DNA from: Dimorphilus gyrociliatus
Lineage: Eukaryota; Animalia; Annelida
Assembly: GCA_904063045.1 (NCBI GenBank)
Contig: CAJFCJ010000016.1
Location: forward strand, 62,001-126,000
Reading direction: 5' to 3'
Length of the DNA stretch: 64,000 nucleotides
This document shows positions 4,858 to 64,000 of the stretch, piece by piece. The notes below the pieces were generated by a model. That model searched no databases. It was not told the origin of the DNA and saw only the letters and a program-made list of their open reading frames with translations. Both the position numbers and the translations under genes were made by a program. Positions within the stretch are counted from its first letter, which is position 1, and each line of letters begins with the position of its first letter.

Positions 4858-5767
4858 GATTATTAATGGTAGTCTTACCAACAAACGTTCCGCTTTCAAA
4901 ATAGTTAGCTATACCTACATATTATTTTCGTACATTTATTAGAAAGACAATAATTTGTTAAATTAAAACCATAATGAGTTTCAAGCTTTTGTTAAATATC
5001 TTATAAATATCTTAAATAAGAATTTTACTGTGTTTTTATTTTTTATACGAAAATAGGCATTCCAAGTCAAAAGAGTCTTTTATATTTTTTTTAGAAGCGC
5101 TTTCCAATTCTACATAATCTGAGAATTTTCCCTATAAAGTTATATTTATGCCGTTAAATATATAGTACCTTTGTTCAAGCAAAGATTGTTTATATTAGAT
5201 TTGTAATAATTAATCAGTTAAGTTAAAAAGTGTTTTCCGAGTAAAATTTAATTTAAGTGCACCATTTTCTCTGTCGAATTAAACTGTAATGTTAGTATTT
5301 CATACATTATCATAATTGGTTTATTGCCATACTGCGTAATCAATATTGCTATTAAACTTTATTTACTCCTGTAATATTAATAAAGAACATTAAATCCATT
5401 TCCAAGTGTTCACTTTAAAACATATCGGCTTGAATCAATACTTTCAAAATATGCTGCTTAAAATGCATTAATCTATAAGTTTATTAATATAGTTTGCTTA
5501 TTATTTGTTTTTTTTGACAGTTAGTTTCTATATAAAACAGTAGTTGTATATATTTTATGCTATTAATCCCTTTAATAGATATCCTAAATGCATAAATACT
5601 TTAATTACGTAACTTATATATTGCGCAACAGTTTAGAAATTCATGTATGATTAATAAATATATTAACAGACTGATTGGATAAGAACCAATGAAAAGTTTA
5701 AAATGGTAGTGTGGCACGATTTCCGGTTGTGAAATCATAGCAGAAGACAGCAAGCAAACGCCGAAAT

Positions 5768-53812: not shown

Positions 53813-56326
53813 TTATGCAATTTGACCGTCTTCTAATTCTTGTAATAGTTTTTGTCTTCTTCTTTCCAGTTCTCCTTCACTTAATTCACTTTCTGAATTC
53901 GTACGCTCTCCTTCCTCAGATGCGGAATGAACAACAGGAGTTAACTAAAAGTAAAAACATATCAAATAGCTACACACAAAAATAGGAAATGTTTTTTATC
54001 AACTTACTGATTTAGATTTCCGACTTTTCTTTTTTTTGGATTTTTTATGCCTCTTATTATCATGCTCGGCTGTAAATGAAAAGTATTATATAATCATTTT
54101 TCAAATAGATTAATTTAAAATAAAGTTTTGATATTTACCCGAGTCAGAAGGCGACTCAGAAGGAGATTTTGAGCGACATTTTTTTTTCTTTTTCTTCTTC
54201 CTATTTTCTTCTTCAGAACCACTGCTTCTAGAGTTGGAGCGAGATCTCTTCTTTAACTTCTTCTTAGCTTTATTACCACCTATTAATAAAATACAATATT
54301 AAACCTCAAAGTTGATTGTCTATTAGTATTTAAATTTACCTTTATGTTGATGGAAACAAGTGTTTTGTAAAGCATGAATATACTCTTTAAAAAACCTTTC
54401 TCTATCACTCTCTAGATCAACGGCTGTGAAAGCTGGATGAGACGCGTATAAATTTCGGACACTCTGCCATGAATCTTGAGGTTGAATTGCTGGATCAGAT
54501 TCTGCTAACAAGTTTTTAAAATTATTCTCAATTTTTTTAATTCTTCTTGCTTCTTCTTTCTCTCTTTCCTTTTCTCGAGCTTCTGCCTTTTCTACTAAAC
54601 TATTATACGTTAATTTTAAATTTCCTTTGTCCAAGTTCTCTGAGCGTTTATCAACGGATACTATTGTCGCCATTTCCTCAAATTTAGTATTTATTTCTAC
54701 TGTGAACTTTTTATCTTTCAGTATCTCTTTGACTGTTTTTTTCTCATCGTAGAACCGAGCTTTCAAATCTTCTACGTAAAATTTAAATAGATCTAGAGGG
54801 GTTGAGCCCGATTGTCCTAACATCGCTGTAAATCTTTGATCTTGTGATATAACAACGTATAAATCCATCCATAAAGACATGGAATTTAATTGGCCAGTTT
54901 CGTGTAGCTCGTCTAATAATACAAGAAATCCTTCTCTATTCTTTCTTTGTTGTCGTTTTAACATTTTTTTCTTATGTTCTTTCTCTTCTTCGTGTTCTTT
55001 TTCCAATTCTTTAATGTGATCTTCGAAACATATTAATGCATCCTCCTTATCCATATTTTGAAGTTCGTGATCTTCAGTAAACTCTGTATTATCTAGAAGC
55101 ATTTGTTGAGCTTCTGTCCATGTTGTTTTGTACGTTAAATCTGGCATTTTGTCCAGTATTTGAGAAAACTTTTTTATATTCTGTTTTCGCAGTCTTTTCG
55201 CCTCCTCCTATAGTAATGGAAATAAAATTTCTCATTTATTATGCTTCTATTTATTATATTACACGTATGACACAAAAATAGTAATAACATACCTTCTCTC
55301 TTTTTGCAACCAACACTATAGCATCTTGGAAGACTTCTCTTCTATCTCTTTCATGTACTGCTCTCCATTGAGGCCTATCCAAAAACAATTGTTCTGCTTT
55401 TCGAAACTTTAAGTTTGAATGGACTCTTTCATTTTCAACTAGAAACGTTTCTAGGTCCTCTTTAGCTTTCTTTTGTTTCTGCCGTTGTTCTTCTTTTTCT
55501 TCTTTTGCTCGTTGTGTTTTGTACTGATTGAAAATTTGCTTCTTCTCAGAAAGACCCTTGAGAGCCGAGAAAATTGGATCAGATTGGATAATTTTCAATG
55601 CATTTTCCCAAGATGTATTAGAACCAATTTTTTTCTCGGATAGCAATTTTTTGAAAGCGTCCACCATCTCTGATTTGTTTTTAAATTTGATTTCTTCCAC
55701 TACTTGTTCTGGGGTGGCTACAGCGCTTAGAGTAGCCTCCATGGCTTTTACTATAGCAGATTTTGATTGGGTTGTTATTGGGCTTTGGACACGCTGAGCA
55801 TTCTCTTGTGCAATCTGACTCTCAATCTCTGTTAGCTCTTTCGGTTTCGTCCAAATCGATTCTTTCGTTTTAGAATTATAGTAATAGATGCGCCCGTCAT
55901 CTGCACGATGCTCTTTCCAGGAGCATTGAGAAAGTAACAGTTCCGATCTTGACTTTAAATCATCTGGTTTCTCCCAAACAGATCTTTTCGTCTCAGAATT
56001 GTAAAAAAAGGTCCGCCCATCAGCCGCTTGATGTTCCGTCCAAGGGGATTTCTTTTGAGGATCAAAATGGGGTGAATAAGTCGAAGGAGAGTTCGAATCG
56101 CTTGTCTGTATACCGGGGGGTCTATGAGGTGGCATTGCCGGCGGTGGTTGCATCCCCATATTCATGCGAAACGGTTGAAATCCTATACCGGTATTGTTGA
56201 TCACTTAAAGCTTATTATATCGTACAAGTTCTTACCTTGTGGGGGCATTCTGGGTGGAGCTGACCAGCCACCCGGTTGGAAATTACCAGGGGGTGGGCCC
56301 CTTGGTCCTCCTGGCATTCCGCTCAT
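53813..56326 (-). CDS. PRPF40A: Pre-mRNA processing factor 40A (2 WW plus FF domains)
   Basis: Pro-rich start, two WW domains ([30 protein letters not shown]), FF repeats, [17 protein letters not shown]-terminal [16 protein letters not shown]. Confidence 0.97.
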
Positions 56327-56751
56327 CCTTTAGATTATTAATTAACTCGTTTTGTCATTAAATAAACAGGATCTTTGTAGAAGCTGAACGCGTCTTCAAA
56401 GAATACCAGTTCTTATTCACAAAGAATGTGACTATTTCGCAAAATTAGTACCGGTAAATTTTAGTAATATGGTTACAGGTTCCGGCACAAGATTTTTTTG
56501 GATAGTTTTCAACAAGTGATTTTAGATTAAAAATTAGTTTTTCTTTCCAAAGTAGAATAACAAGAAGACAATTATTTTCAATTAAAAGAACGTTATAACA
56601 TAGCTTTTAACACATGAAACTATTTTCTGAAATGACTCTAATTTCTATTTACATTAAAATCTGTTGAAAATACTATTTTCATTGTTTAATGTCAGGTATA
56701 TAATAATCATAAGTTAAGTTTTAGTCATAAACTATAAAAGTTTATTCATTA

Positions 56752-57333
56752 TTATTTTAGATAAAATAAAAAGTCGCTCTTTTTATCAATCATAATTTCG
56801 ACAAGTGAAATCAGATAGGGAGAATTTCTTATTTGATTCTTCTCTATATCCGACTTTTTTTTGCTTGCGAGCTTCAAAGAGATAAGCTCTTGGTATGCAT
56901 TAACAAGACGCATCCAGGATACGCAGTTGTCAAACATTCCTGGCAACAACTACTGGAAAAAAGCATACATAAGAAGTCCAGTGATGAAAATTGTTCCAAC
57001 AACGCCAAACAATTGAACGAGAATAATTGAGAAATCTCCAGAAATTTCACCAACTATAAAAGGATGGCAAAACGCATAGTATAATGCTGTACAAAGGATA
57101 GATATCACAATAAGTTCAGTGATAACATCAGCGTTGGTTGGTCCAAACTTCCTGCCTAGTTGTCGCCAAGTAGGTCTAAGAGGAAAAAAACATATAATAG
57201 CCATCTAATAACAATCGAAGTTTTTTTTACCAAAGGCTTATCATAAGATTATTATACTATTAGAATGTGTTCGATAATTTAAAATAGTGAAAAATTCATG
57301 CACTTACCTTTCAACTGCGTATCCGAGTCATTG
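56752..57333 (-). other. In-frame downstream extension of NAA20 (candidate readthrough/recoded region) with an intron at 57176-57307
   Basis: After the NAA20 UGA: CAA UGA CUC GGA UAC GCA GUU GAA AG|GTAAGT...TTTTTTTCCTCTTAG|A CCU ACU UGG. The frame stays open 75 codons (two TM helices) to UAG 56950-56952, then 65 more codons to UAA 56752-56754; AATAAA at 56746-56741. Confidence 0.55.
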
Positions 57334-57349
57334 TCATTCAAGCTCCTCT
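56878..57349 (-). other. Long rod-like RNA secondary structure in the NAA20 mRNA
   Basis: Nested inverted repeats read from the sequence, including a perfect 13-bp pair (57312-57324 with 56917-56929) and a 13-bp pair with 2 GU (57157-57169 with 56940-56952), plus about six more helices in colinear order. Confidence 0.8.
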
Positions 57350-58103
57350 GGTCTAATTGGATCTTTAGGAGCTATTAGAGATTTCTTCTCTTTGTCGGCT
57401 GGCAGCGCCTTTCTCATATCAAATGCATCTTCTTCAGCCTCAGTCGGTGTTCCTGAATAGTAACTGAGAACTCGTCGATATACAATATAGCCGAAATTTT
57501 CGTACATTTTTATGGCAACTTTATTCGAAACTCGCACAAAAAGGTCAACAAAATGGCAATCTTGCCTTTAGAAAAAGAATGTTATAAATAGAAAATGTTG
57601 TTAAAATACGAAAAATAGACTTACTTTTCAGAATATTCTTCTAATGACTGCATAAGCTTTCTTGCTATTCCAAGTCGCCTATATTCTGGTGCTACTGTGA
57701 GAGCAGTAACATGACCATGCCAGTTATCCCCAGTTCCCTCAACTTTTCCTAAGACTATAGTAAATACAAATTAAATTTAACTCTTTATATTTTTATACTC
57801 GTATTAACTCACTGTATCCCTGAATTCTACCATCAGGCCCTTCAGCTACCAAACATAGCTCTGGCCATTTGGTTAAATACATCATGTAGAAAAAATTTCC
57901 ATACTATTAAAACGAAAAAATAGAGATTTATTGTTTGAACTCTATAAAACTATTTAATATAACTTACAGTTTCGGTATAAGGATCAAGGTTTCTGTGGGT
58001 AGTTGAGCGATATTAAAATATATTTTTAAAGTTACTTTTGTTGAACTTACATATTATTAAATTGAAAAAGGTCACTAGACGTGAAAGGCCTAATATTTGT
58101 CAT
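57334..58103 (-). CDS. NAA20: N-alpha-acetyltransferase 20, NatB catalytic subunit (176 aa)
   Basis: MTNIRPFTSSDLFQFNNINLDPYTETY, WHGHVTALTVAPEYRRLGIA, FVDLFVRVSNKVAIKMY, EDAFDMRKAL, ends PIRPEELE*; five coding exons. Confidence 0.97.
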
Positions 58104-61924: not shown

Positions 61925-64000
61925 TCAGTCTTCTTGGATGACCTCCTTGGCCCCTATTTCTGATTTGACTTTCTTAAAACATTCTTCCAAAAAGGTGTGC
62001 TATTATTAAAAAAATATTCGTTATATTTATTAAAAATGAACTAGATGAGTATATTATAAACTATATATAGAAAATATAGGAAATATGGGAAAAATTTCCC
62101 ATTTTTAGAAATACAGTATTATTCCCAGTGTTTGTAATTATTTGCATTGTATAAATAATATCTTATTGTCTATCCTTTGTATGACGTATTATTTCTTTAT
62201 AGTGTAGTTAAATACAATATATGTTATATAGTGTATTTTCCAAAAATATCAATACTTACAAAATTTGTAAATATCCGAACTAATCTCGGTTTCTTTCCAG
62301 GTCTTTCGTATTCAAAGTTAAATGAACTGCCGTTATAATCTGATTCAAAACTTGAAATATCTTTCCAACTGAACTCAATTACTTGGTTCTATGAATGAGA
62401 TTATATTTTATTATTGACAACTCCCAAAAAAAATGACCAGCTGATTGAGTAACTTACCTCTACAGTTCCATCTTCTTTGCAGGCTTGTAATCTAAAAGCG
62501 GTAAACGACACTCTGGCAACCACGTGACCGTCTTTTCTCGAATCGCACGAACAGTGAGGAAATGCAATTTCACCGTAGTTATCGAACGATGCCACCTCGA
62601 GCAAGTATTTGTCAATTCTATTGGCCTTCTTTAAAACATTTATATGGGAAACTTTCGATGGTTTAACTTTAATATTTCCCTTCGAAATATCCTCCGTAAC
62701 GTTGTGAAAGACAAATGAACGGGCCAGCTGGTCTTCATATAGTATTTCCTTTTCTAACTCAATGTTAAAAAGCCATTTTTTAAGGGCAATACAAGATGGA
62801 GCCGCAGTATTATAGTTTTGAATGTAGATACTATGAGGTTGTTCCTGGTCCATAATTTTACGATCTAAAATACAAGAAACATTCTGGTTGACAATATGCA
62901 AAATTCGTATTTAGATTATAAAATAAAGAATATAATTACCGAAATTGGTGTCAACAATTTCAAAAAGTGCAAAATGTTTCGCGATTTCGGTTTTCATACC
63001 AATCTTTTTCGTTACTAACTGTTTTTTGATATTTTTGTTTTTTTATAAAGAAAATAGAAGATAGTGGAACGTGTATATAAAATATTATTTCTTAGCTGAA
63101 CTTACTGAATGAACTTTTCTGGCGTCGGCATCTTTTGATATAATTATACTTGCAATATTTTTATCGGGTAATAAAATCTTGAGTTGAACTTCGCTTTTAT
63201 CACTCGTCTAGTAAAATCATATATAAATATAATATAAGATATGATAATAAGACGCTATCAACTTACTCCATTTTCTGACTGTGTTCCAAGGAACTCCTGC
63301 ATGCCATCACTATCCGCAATTACCCTAACTGAGCATACTTTTTCTAAATATTGTTCTAAACCTCTCCGCCTAGCATCCAATTGTTGTTCAGACATTGTAA
63401 AAGGCCATTTGCCAGGAAATTTTGGAAATTGAAAATCGGGGAATTCTCTTTTTAGAATATTGTGAATGTTAGAAAATTCTCTATATCTCCTTGAACATAG
63501 ATGACGTCCTGCCATGTGTATATGATACACAATAAACCGACTGTCCGAATCACGTAGTGTCTCATAGTCTGGTATAGTTATAGGCAACGACCGCTTATCC
63601 GAATAATCAACTGTTGAAGGTCCGGACGATTCATCCGACGGTTCTAGACGTTCGGCAACTTGTCTTGGAACTGATATAACTATTTTATAAAAAAAATTAC
63701 ATATTAGATAGTCACGTAACAGTTATTAAATATTAGTAAACATATATTTTCTTACCTGTTAATGTCAAAACATCTCCTCCAGATTTTATCAGATCAACAA
63801 CATGTTTGTGGGTGGAACCTTCCACATTAGCCCCATTACTGGAGGAAACCAATAAAATTTTAATTAAAAGTTAATTATGATATATTTTAAGCCGATAAAG
63901 ATTATAATCTGGACAGTTTTTAAATGGAAATAATATATATGGACTACCCAATTGACCAGATCGGTAAATAAAAAGAGAAATATGTAAATTGTAATATGTT
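61925..64000 (-). CDS. SNX27: Sorting nexin 27 (PDZ-PX-FERM-like), 5'-partial
   Basis: PDZ end ([17 protein letters not shown]), [17 protein letters not shown] ([36 protein letters not shown]), [19 protein letters not shown]; last exon ends EVIQED* (61925-61927). Confidence 0.96.

Follow-up and report, generated by a model that had tools for sequence, protein, structure and literature searches.

A conserved frame behind two UGA codons of NAA20 in dinophilid annelids, a candidate for double stop-codon readthrough to a membrane-anchored NatB subunit

The window analyzed here, 64,000 nucleotides (nt) of contig CAJFCJ010000016.1 (forward-strand positions 62,001 to 126,000; assembly GCA_904063045.1) from the annelid Dimorphilus gyrociliatus, carries on its minus strand NAA20, the gene for the catalytic subunit of the N-terminal acetyltransferase NatB, followed in the same frame by two UGA codons, an intron and a further open reading frame (ORF), hereafter the extension. 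Comparison with related worms confirmed, from the pattern of substitutions, that the extension is protein-coding, and because the feature is conserved in these relatives it is, judged by the sequences, far more than a chance arrangement. The best reading that we can offer is programmed readthrough of both stops, which would yield a membrane-anchored NAA20 of ~260 aa and which we give an even chance of being correct. A fuller proposal, to which we assign slightly less than an even chance, is that dinophilids make a membrane-anchored NatB subunit via the two UGAs with the help of an RNA rod that would form only after splicing of the 3' untranslated region (3'UTR), would loop out the extension ORF and would pair its terminal stop.

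The NAA20 gene and its spliced mRNA

The NAA20 coding sequence (CDS) comprises five exons (58103-58051, 57992-57968, 57903-57813, 57754-57625 and 57565-57337; here and below, features of the window lie on the minus strand) and encodes 176 aa. The spliced translation, with its junctions present in transcript contigs, is identical to the annotated N-alpha-acetyltransferase 20 of D. gyrociliatus (P0003; DgyrCDS10560, CAD5122110.1). The window's G+C content of 31% and the introns of ~60 nt described in the genome paper (PMC7854359) agree with this species. The protein is orthologous over its full length to the NatB catalytic subunit, a member of the GNAT superfamily, with 64-68% identity to NAA20 proteins of animals, and the Pfam family Acetyltransf_1 was found on an NAA20 orthologue. 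Its C-terminus (..PEELE) coincides with the usual end point of NAA20 in other animals. C-terminally extended versions were sought there and rejected, as the longer entries (192-238 aa) owe their length to sequence added at the N-terminus or duplicated internally, and each of them keeps the usual C-terminus. In one such entry, the 238-aa NAA20 of Notodromas monacha (P0006), ~70 residues of the GNAT core occur twice and the N-terminus is missing; the entry looks like an artefact of the gene model or the assembly rather than an extended NAA20.

Evidence for transcription was taken from Logan assembled contigs (runs X3, X4 and X5) and from the transcript L005, in which, as in contigs generally, minor isoforms and editing are invisible. 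Run X3 yielded a 1083-nt contig with 0 differences to the window, in which the four CDS introns as well as a fifth one (joint 57175/57308) are spliced, while X4 contributed pieces matching the locus. Run X5, from a relative with ~90% identity, yielded a 1126-nt contig with the same five junctions (the last one at 57175/57309, with the junction codon AAA), and L005 is a spliced transcript of a third lineage with the same structure. The fifth intron, of the GT..AG type, spans 132 nt (57176-57307) of the annotated 3'UTR. Its donor (AAAG/GTAAGT) follows position 57308, 26 nt past the first stop, its acceptor (CTCTTAG/A) precedes position 57175, and the junction codon AG+A encodes Arg. The initial annotation of this DNA had proposed the two stops, both splice sites and the in-phase junction from the letters alone, and the joints in X3, X5 and L005 bear out the splicing. 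The orthologous intron in the relative's contig L001 has 51 nt (4970-5020), and both lengths, 132 and 51, are multiples of 3. The X3 contig extends to position 56714, 27 nt beyond an AATAAA signal (56741-56746), which places the poly(A) site downstream of the extension, as had been supposed. Thus, the 3'UTR intron is genuine, and in the dominant mRNA a single frame holds NAA20, the two stops and the extension exon.

Translation of the spliced frame reads PEELE, stop, Q, stop, LGYAVERPTWRQ and so on to YAFFQ and a stop. The extension exon (56953-57175) provides 74 codons and the last base of the junction codon, and is closed by TAG (56950-56952). The spliced mRNA of D. gyrociliatus contains no in-frame AUG from which the extension could start, in agreement with the initial annotation; the only Met of the extension is located near its C-terminus. 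The claim that the NAA20 frame stays open past the stops held as well, but the other two frames contain 3 stops each over the 74 codons, and not the four or more that had been counted.

Coding selection, the stop cassette and the RNA structure

The comparison covered four lineages: D. gyrociliatus, a second species (sp2, genomic contigs L001-L004), a third species (sp3, transcript L005) and the relative from run X5, two of them represented by genomes. The X5 extension was rebuilt from the listed differences, with ~5 differences near the ends of the pieces unlisted, and the comparisons of the stops and the post-stop segment were made on the other three species. In sp2 the ORF was recognized as P0001, a protein of 81 aa with 66% identity to the 84-aa genomic ORF of the window, encoded between the last NAA20 exon and a PRPF40-like neighbor. 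The extension is open, of equal length and free of insertions or deletions in D. gyrociliatus, sp2 and sp3, and, to judge by the listed differences, open in X5 too. The initial annotation had named orthologues with frameshifts or stops as grounds for refutation, and none of the relatives examined has such an extension. In sp3 alone the extension contains an internal in-frame ATG (ADIMTV; L005 655-663), lacking in D. gyrociliatus and sp2, which could start a 56-aa product.

The pairwise ratios of nonsynonymous to synonymous substitution rates (dN/dS) of the extension among D. gyrociliatus, sp2 and sp3 are 0.36, 0.21 and 0.25, and the approximate value against X5 is ~0.39. The differences are distributed over the three codon positions as 20:8:25, 17:8:31 and 18:2:24 in the three pairs. 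For NAA20 itself the same three lineages give a dN/dS of 0.013-0.025 with a saturated synonymous divergence (dS) of 1.35-1.40. A permutation test, in which the observed substitutions were moved to random sites of the same base (20,000 permutations), gave on average 28-35 amino-acid changes compared to the 19-24 observed, and just 7-29% of the permuted sequences were stop-free. The joint P-value for the whole exon is below 5e-5 (0/20,000) for both pairs involving D. gyrociliatus and 1.5e-4 for sp2-sp3, and for the central codons 16-57 (42 codons outside the long-range helices described below) it is 0.002-0.005. The alignment shows wobble-only changes in ALYY, HP and GEI.GDF and exchanges among I, L, V and F in two hydrophobic stretches. 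Hence the coding nature of the extension, presumed in the initial annotation, is upheld by the substitutions, and the locus exhibits one of the features by which readthrough genes are recognized, an in-frame ORF after the stop that evolves under coding selection and without frameshifts in relatives.

Two further possibilities were considered and rejected. A third extension, past TAG 56950, would comprise 65 open codons in the window (56752-56949), but it closes after 19 codons in sp2 and 21 in sp3; similarity past this stop ends with the helix partner, and the short conserved stretch (LLPGMFDNCVSW) is the right strand of the RNA structure. An antisense gene as the cause of the conservation was set aside as well, as plus-strand ORFs reach only the end of the exon and codons CTA, TTA and TCA of the extension are stops in the aligned antisense frame.

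The stop cassette UGA CAA UGA (57328-57336) places the two in-frame stops, 57336-57334 and 57330-57328, one Gln codon apart and is followed by CUC. All 18 of 18 bases of the block CTTGAA TGA CAA TGA CTC are identical in D. gyrociliatus, sp2 and sp3, compared with 45% identity at the third codon positions of NAA20 and 15% (9/60 bases) in the distal 3'UTR, while the codons directly upstream of the block still vary synonymously (GAG GAG vs GAA GAA). The post-stop segment (57308-57327), CTC GGA TAC GCA GTT GAA AG, encodes Leu-Gly-Tyr-Ala-Val-Glu plus two bases of the junction codon, and differs in the relatives just by TAC to TAT, synonymous and compensated in a helix, and by AGA to AAA (Arg to Lys). 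L001 of sp2 reads TGA CAA TGA CTC GGA TAT GCA GTT GAA AA/GT, and L005 of sp3 has the same sequence in spliced form. The first UGA stands between AA and CAA, the latter corresponding to the CAR of the type I readthrough motif (PMC3542737), and the second one is followed by C. Both UGAs are invariant, whereas the terminal stop varies between TAG in D. gyrociliatus and TAA in sp2 and sp3; a constant leaky stop with a variable terminal one is typical of readthrough genes, and double and adjacent-stop candidates have been listed in Anopheles (PMC5100048). A putatively leaky stop kept in a favorable context, ahead of a freely varying terminal stop, is thus found in all three species.

RNA folding was compared among the minimum free energy (MFE) structures of the spliced region of D. 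gyrociliatus and sp2, the three-species alifold consensus, and, for the native spliced L005, both the MFE and the centroid fold. All folds agree on a long-range rod, and the L005 fold has a z-score of -2.58. The left arm of its first helix, H1 (GGATACGCAGTTG, 57312-57324), begins 9 nt past the first stop and 3 nt past the second, and pairs over 13 bp with a right arm in the distal 3'UTR (CAACTGCGTATCC, 56917-56929) in both the MFE and the alifold structures. The 13-bp helix behind a 9-nt spacer, described already in the initial annotation, was therefore recovered, and the comparison adds covariation to it, with one compensatory change from C-G to U-A in sp2 and sp3. A further helix of 14 bp in the alifold consensus, H3, joins the codons of TWRQL (CTTGGCGACAACTA, 57157-57170) to a right arm (TAGTTGTTGCCAGG, 56939-56952) and thereby pairs the terminal stop of the extension (56950-56952). 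H3 displays one compensatory change (CTA to TTA together with the terminal TAG to TAA), two G-C/G-U changes and one break in sp3. Three shorter helices lie nearby: H2 right at the exon junction, H4 (57151-57144 with 56993-56986) and H5 (57141-57130 with 57006-56996). Because the left strand crosses the exon junction, the rod is confined to spliced RNA. The 3'UTR is conserved precisely up to the right arm of H1, with 30/39 columns identical as against 9/60 in the next 60 nt. Neither UGA is part of a conserved helix; the stretch around them is unpaired or forms a weak local hairpin. A 3' RNA structure starting ~8 nt downstream of a leaky stop and supported by covariation, another hallmark of readthrough genes, is consequently present in the form of the 13-bp H1 and the 14-bp H3.

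The protein encoded by the extension is predicted to form a membrane hairpin. The two hydrophobic segments proposed in the initial annotation were retrieved by Kyte-Doolittle analysis, with 19-residue windows of at least 1.6 at both segments in all three species, and by AlphaFold2 modeling, which predicted helices at residues 13-41 and 47-74 (predicted local distance difference test score, pLDDT, 70.8). The hydrophobic helix 1 comprises residues ~18-36 (57070-57126) and helix 2 residues ~51-70 (56968-57027). Basic residues outnumber acidic ones in the N-terminal flank (4 to 5 against 1 to 2), and the loop has 2 acidic residues but no basic ones. With two segments of ~19 or more residues and a basic N-terminal flank, the extension has the attributes of a two-pass hairpin that may insert into a membrane. 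No match to the extension family was found in Pfam, ESM Atlas features gave an uninformative best value of 0.86, and a word-indexed search with the single ORF returned no homologue. A HMMER search of 1.84 billion representative proteins and a profile built from three ORFs matched P0001 alone, with no homologues beyond dinophilids.

Readthrough and the competing explanations

According to the reading that we favor, the majority of ribosomes would halt at the first UGA and release the ordinary 176-aa NAA20, while a fraction would decode both UGAs with near-cognate tRNAs, aided by the stop contexts (AA before and CAA after the first stop, C after the second) and by the long-range rod. The product of ~260 aa would consist of NAA20, a basic linker and the two-helix hydrophobic hairpin, the latter acting as a membrane tether that would hold NAA20 on the cytosolic side. 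Readthrough of both UGAs would link the match in frame with the invariant stop block, the position of the helix and the missing AUG. We infer the passage of ribosomes through the stops, the efficiency of readthrough, its stimulation by the helix, the topology of the hairpin and the identity of the target membrane. The tethering of NatB activity to a membrane, proposed in the initial annotation by analogy with NAA60, is likewise inferred.

Several points weigh against this reading. Passage beyond the stops is deduced from sequence; there are two stops to pass, so the yield would be the product of two efficiencies, and tandem stops are usually taken as a fail-safe. The transcripts analyzed were contigs, which hide minor isoforms and editing. 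The helices could serve another purpose, e.g. to shorten the effective 3'UTR. The dS of the extension, 0.6-0.9, is below the ~1.4 of NAA20, and part of its conservation is therefore at the RNA level; this may apply in part to the N-terminal residues (PTWRQLGRKFGPT) and to GTIF. Finally, both genomes contain an in-frame ATG within the intron (57204 and L001 5001), and the donors of exons 1 and 4 share the phase of the post-stop donor, so that skipping would preserve the frame. The last two points lead to the two most serious competitors.

Perhaps the extension is a gene in its own right, i.e. a micro-protein of 81-84 aa with two membrane helices, initiated at the intronic ATG on transcripts that start in or just before the intron or retain it, with the match to the NAA20 frame being coincidental? 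We regard this as unlikely, although it is the alternative that survives best. The ATG at 57202-57204, which the initial annotation had itself named as a rival start, is directly preceded by TAG and has A at -3 and G at +4 (TAG ATG G). Its counterpart at L001 5001 (TAA ATG A), directly preceded by TAA and with A at -3, strengthens the case, as neither genome has a stop between the ATG and the acceptor, and since in-frame ATGs occur in 12-17% of cases at acceptor-like sites in these sequences (an expectation of 0.13-0.17 per species), the joint chance for both genomes is ~0.02. Moreover, a gene caller chose exactly the micro-protein ORF in the relative (P0001), and coding selection suits a micro-protein as well as readthrough. 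On the other hand, all three assembled transcripts (X3, X5 and L005) are spliced and lack the intronic ATG, the evidence for which comes from two genomes only. The L001 intron of just 51 nt would confine the start site to ~30 nt, and if transcription began earlier, short upstream ORFs would precede the ATG. The N-termini encoded by the introns (AIICFFPL vs IFVSL) are not conserved, the match to the NAA20 frame costs a factor of 3, and the invariant 18-base stop block as well as the covarying helix arm upstream of the intron are left unexplained. The intron of the window also holds TATAATAA ~50 nt upstream of the ATG, maybe by chance in AT-rich sequence.

Exon skipping, which we consider improbable, would require no recoding: if a phase-2 donor, either that of exon 4 (57625) or that of exon 1 (58051), were joined to the acceptor at 57175, an AUG-initiated in-frame protein would result. 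In the first case it would have ~174 aa, with the hairpin behind half of a GNAT domain, and in the second 92 aa, with the hairpin behind 17 aa of NAA20. With 53 nt in exon 1 and 299 nt in exons 1-4, either donor is in phase 2, as demanded by the acceptor; alternative splicing is far more common than readthrough, and Logan contigs drop minor isoforms. However, no such joint was found in any transcript contig examined and no protein of the 92-aa type in the protein collections searched. The 174-aa product would be devoid of the C-terminal half of the acetyltransferase fold, and neither the stop block nor the helix arm, which this splicing would remove along with exon 5, is explained.

It is very improbable that the extension is untranslated at present and that its conservation reflects only a 3'UTR rod, serving, e.g., mRNA stability or localization or drawing the poly(A) tail towards the stop, with the open frame as a relic. 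The reduced dS, the covarying helices, the conserved partner region in the UTR and the fold z-score of -2.58 are in line with this view. Nevertheless, a purely RNA-level explanation is disfavored because the central 42 codons, located outside the helices, still bear a coding signal, with codon periodicity and the synonymous excess persisting there (P 0.002-0.005). Furthermore, the frame has stayed open, even though the same changes placed at random usually produce stops. The restriction of changes to wobble positions in ALYY, HP and GEI.GDF also speaks against a mere RNA rod, as do the conservative I/L/V/F swaps in the hydrophobic segments.

Recoding of the UGAs by duplex-guided A-to-I editing (UGA to UGG) or by selenocysteine insertion is the least probable of the alternatives: both stops are UGA, a long imperfect duplex adjoins them and annelids have ADARs, but the stops are located outside the conserved helices, the G that precedes the A of UGA is disfavored by ADAR, the transcript contigs carry A at both stops (though contigs conceal minor variants), and no SECIS-like match (selenocysteine insertion sequence) was detected at E-values up to 10 in window positions 56500-57600, L004 and L005, which lends no support to a selenoprotein gene. 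A cryptic in-frame donor removing just the stops was rejected, as there is no in-frame GT donor within ~170 nt upstream; conservation among in-frame GT sites is limited to two weak ones (CDS nt 101 and 359), the use of which would truncate NAA20. A trans-spliced or operon-derived mRNA is ruled out by the genome paper, according to which operons and trans-splicing are absent from the species (PMC7854359).

Relation to known systems and genomic setting

Among the known readthrough signals, the closest likeness is offered by the type II viral stimulators (alphavirus nsP3/nsP4, tobra-, furo- and coltiviruses), which consist of UGA-C, a spacer of 8-9 nt, a stem of 11-12 bp and a loop of ~100 nt (PMC3159437; PMC3542737). 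In alphaviruses and plant viruses this stem raises readthrough 3- to 14-fold (PMC3159437). The NAA20 cassette resembles them in the UGA-C context, in a stem of the 11-13-bp class located 8-9 nt after the stop, in arms that are far apart with a less conserved loop between them, and in raised synonymous-site conservation with compensatory changes (PMC3159437). It differs from them in that it belongs to a cellular annelid gene with two stops one codon apart, its loop of ~250 nt holds nearly the whole extension ORF, its left strand spans an exon junction, so that the rod exists only post-splicing, and a second helix pairs the terminal stop; stimulation of readthrough is proposed here by analogy. 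With the tobamovirus type I signal (stop-CAR-YYA) the cassette shares the first UGA followed by CAA, but the next triplet is UGA and not YYA (PMC3542737).

With the readthrough genes of Drosophila and Anopheles described by Jungreis et al., the NAA20 locus shares a coding in-frame second ORF, a fixed leaky stop with a varying terminal one, C after the stop and a sharp fall of conservation past the last stop (PMC5100048). By these comparative features it is a candidate for such a gene. In contrast to the insect cases, it is found in a spiralian (Dinophilidae), its stops are split by CAA instead of being adjacent, an intron precedes the extension, and the evidence comes from 3-4 species, not 12-21 genomes. 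The stop context also fits a looser yeast consensus, CA(A/G)N(U/C/G)A, reportedly defined by Namy et al. in 2001.

At the protein level, the likeness to NAA60 is one of idea only, namely an N-terminal acetyltransferase catalytic subunit placed at a membrane via its C-terminus. NAA60 is the product of a separate gene and is anchored by its own constitutive C-terminal region, whereas the extension of NAA20 has no detectable homologue or Pfam family and would be present in a fraction of NAA20 molecules. Peroxisomal LDHB and MDH1 as well as AQP4ex are minor, C-terminally extended readthrough isoforms that relocate housekeeping proteins; here the addition would be a 75-aa two-helix hairpin behind two stops and a splice junction. 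To our knowledge, insects and viruses offer well-documented cases of conserved programmed readthrough, and spiralians hardly any. A full-text search on NAA20 and readthrough returned, a Naa10 review aside, no description of a membrane-anchored NAA20 or NatB isoform. What sets this locus apart is the combination of stops one codon apart, an intron before the extension, a splicing-dependent structure enclosing the extension and a hairpin payload on a NatB subunit.

If the double readthrough is real, NatB would gain a membrane-bound pool, e.g. at ribosomes bound to the endoplasmic reticulum or at the surface of an organelle, and one cellular mRNA would couple its splicing and its RNA structure to recoding. 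The region would then represent a compact natural cassette (~300 nt when spliced) in which the pair of stops acts jointly with a splice junction and a covarying long-range helix. If, instead, the extension is a separate micro-protein, it would be a conserved, lineage-specific membrane protein whose start codon is removed by splicing of the 3'UTR intron of its host, which would itself be unusual.

Some additional matches to the locus were noted. A coral metatranscriptome (run X1) contains a 209-nt spliced NAA20 contig over positions 57443-57710 that differs from D. gyrociliatus in 1 of 209 bases, which suggests that the worm or a very close relative was present in that coral aquarium or sample. 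In run X5 a more abundant contig of 448 nt (record 6) matches just 36 nt of the window (57694-57729, the acetyl-CoA-binding motif) and is unlike it on either side; it probably represents another GNAT gene or another organism in the sample. Downstream of NAA20 follows a gene resembling PRPF40/TCERG1, the product of which has WW and FF domains (positions 55500-56330 of the window; in L001, 6121-8164). Its order and orientation are the same in the relative, so local synteny holds across a dS of ~1.4. Upstream in L001 there are ORFs related to the VPS4-like AAA ATPases.

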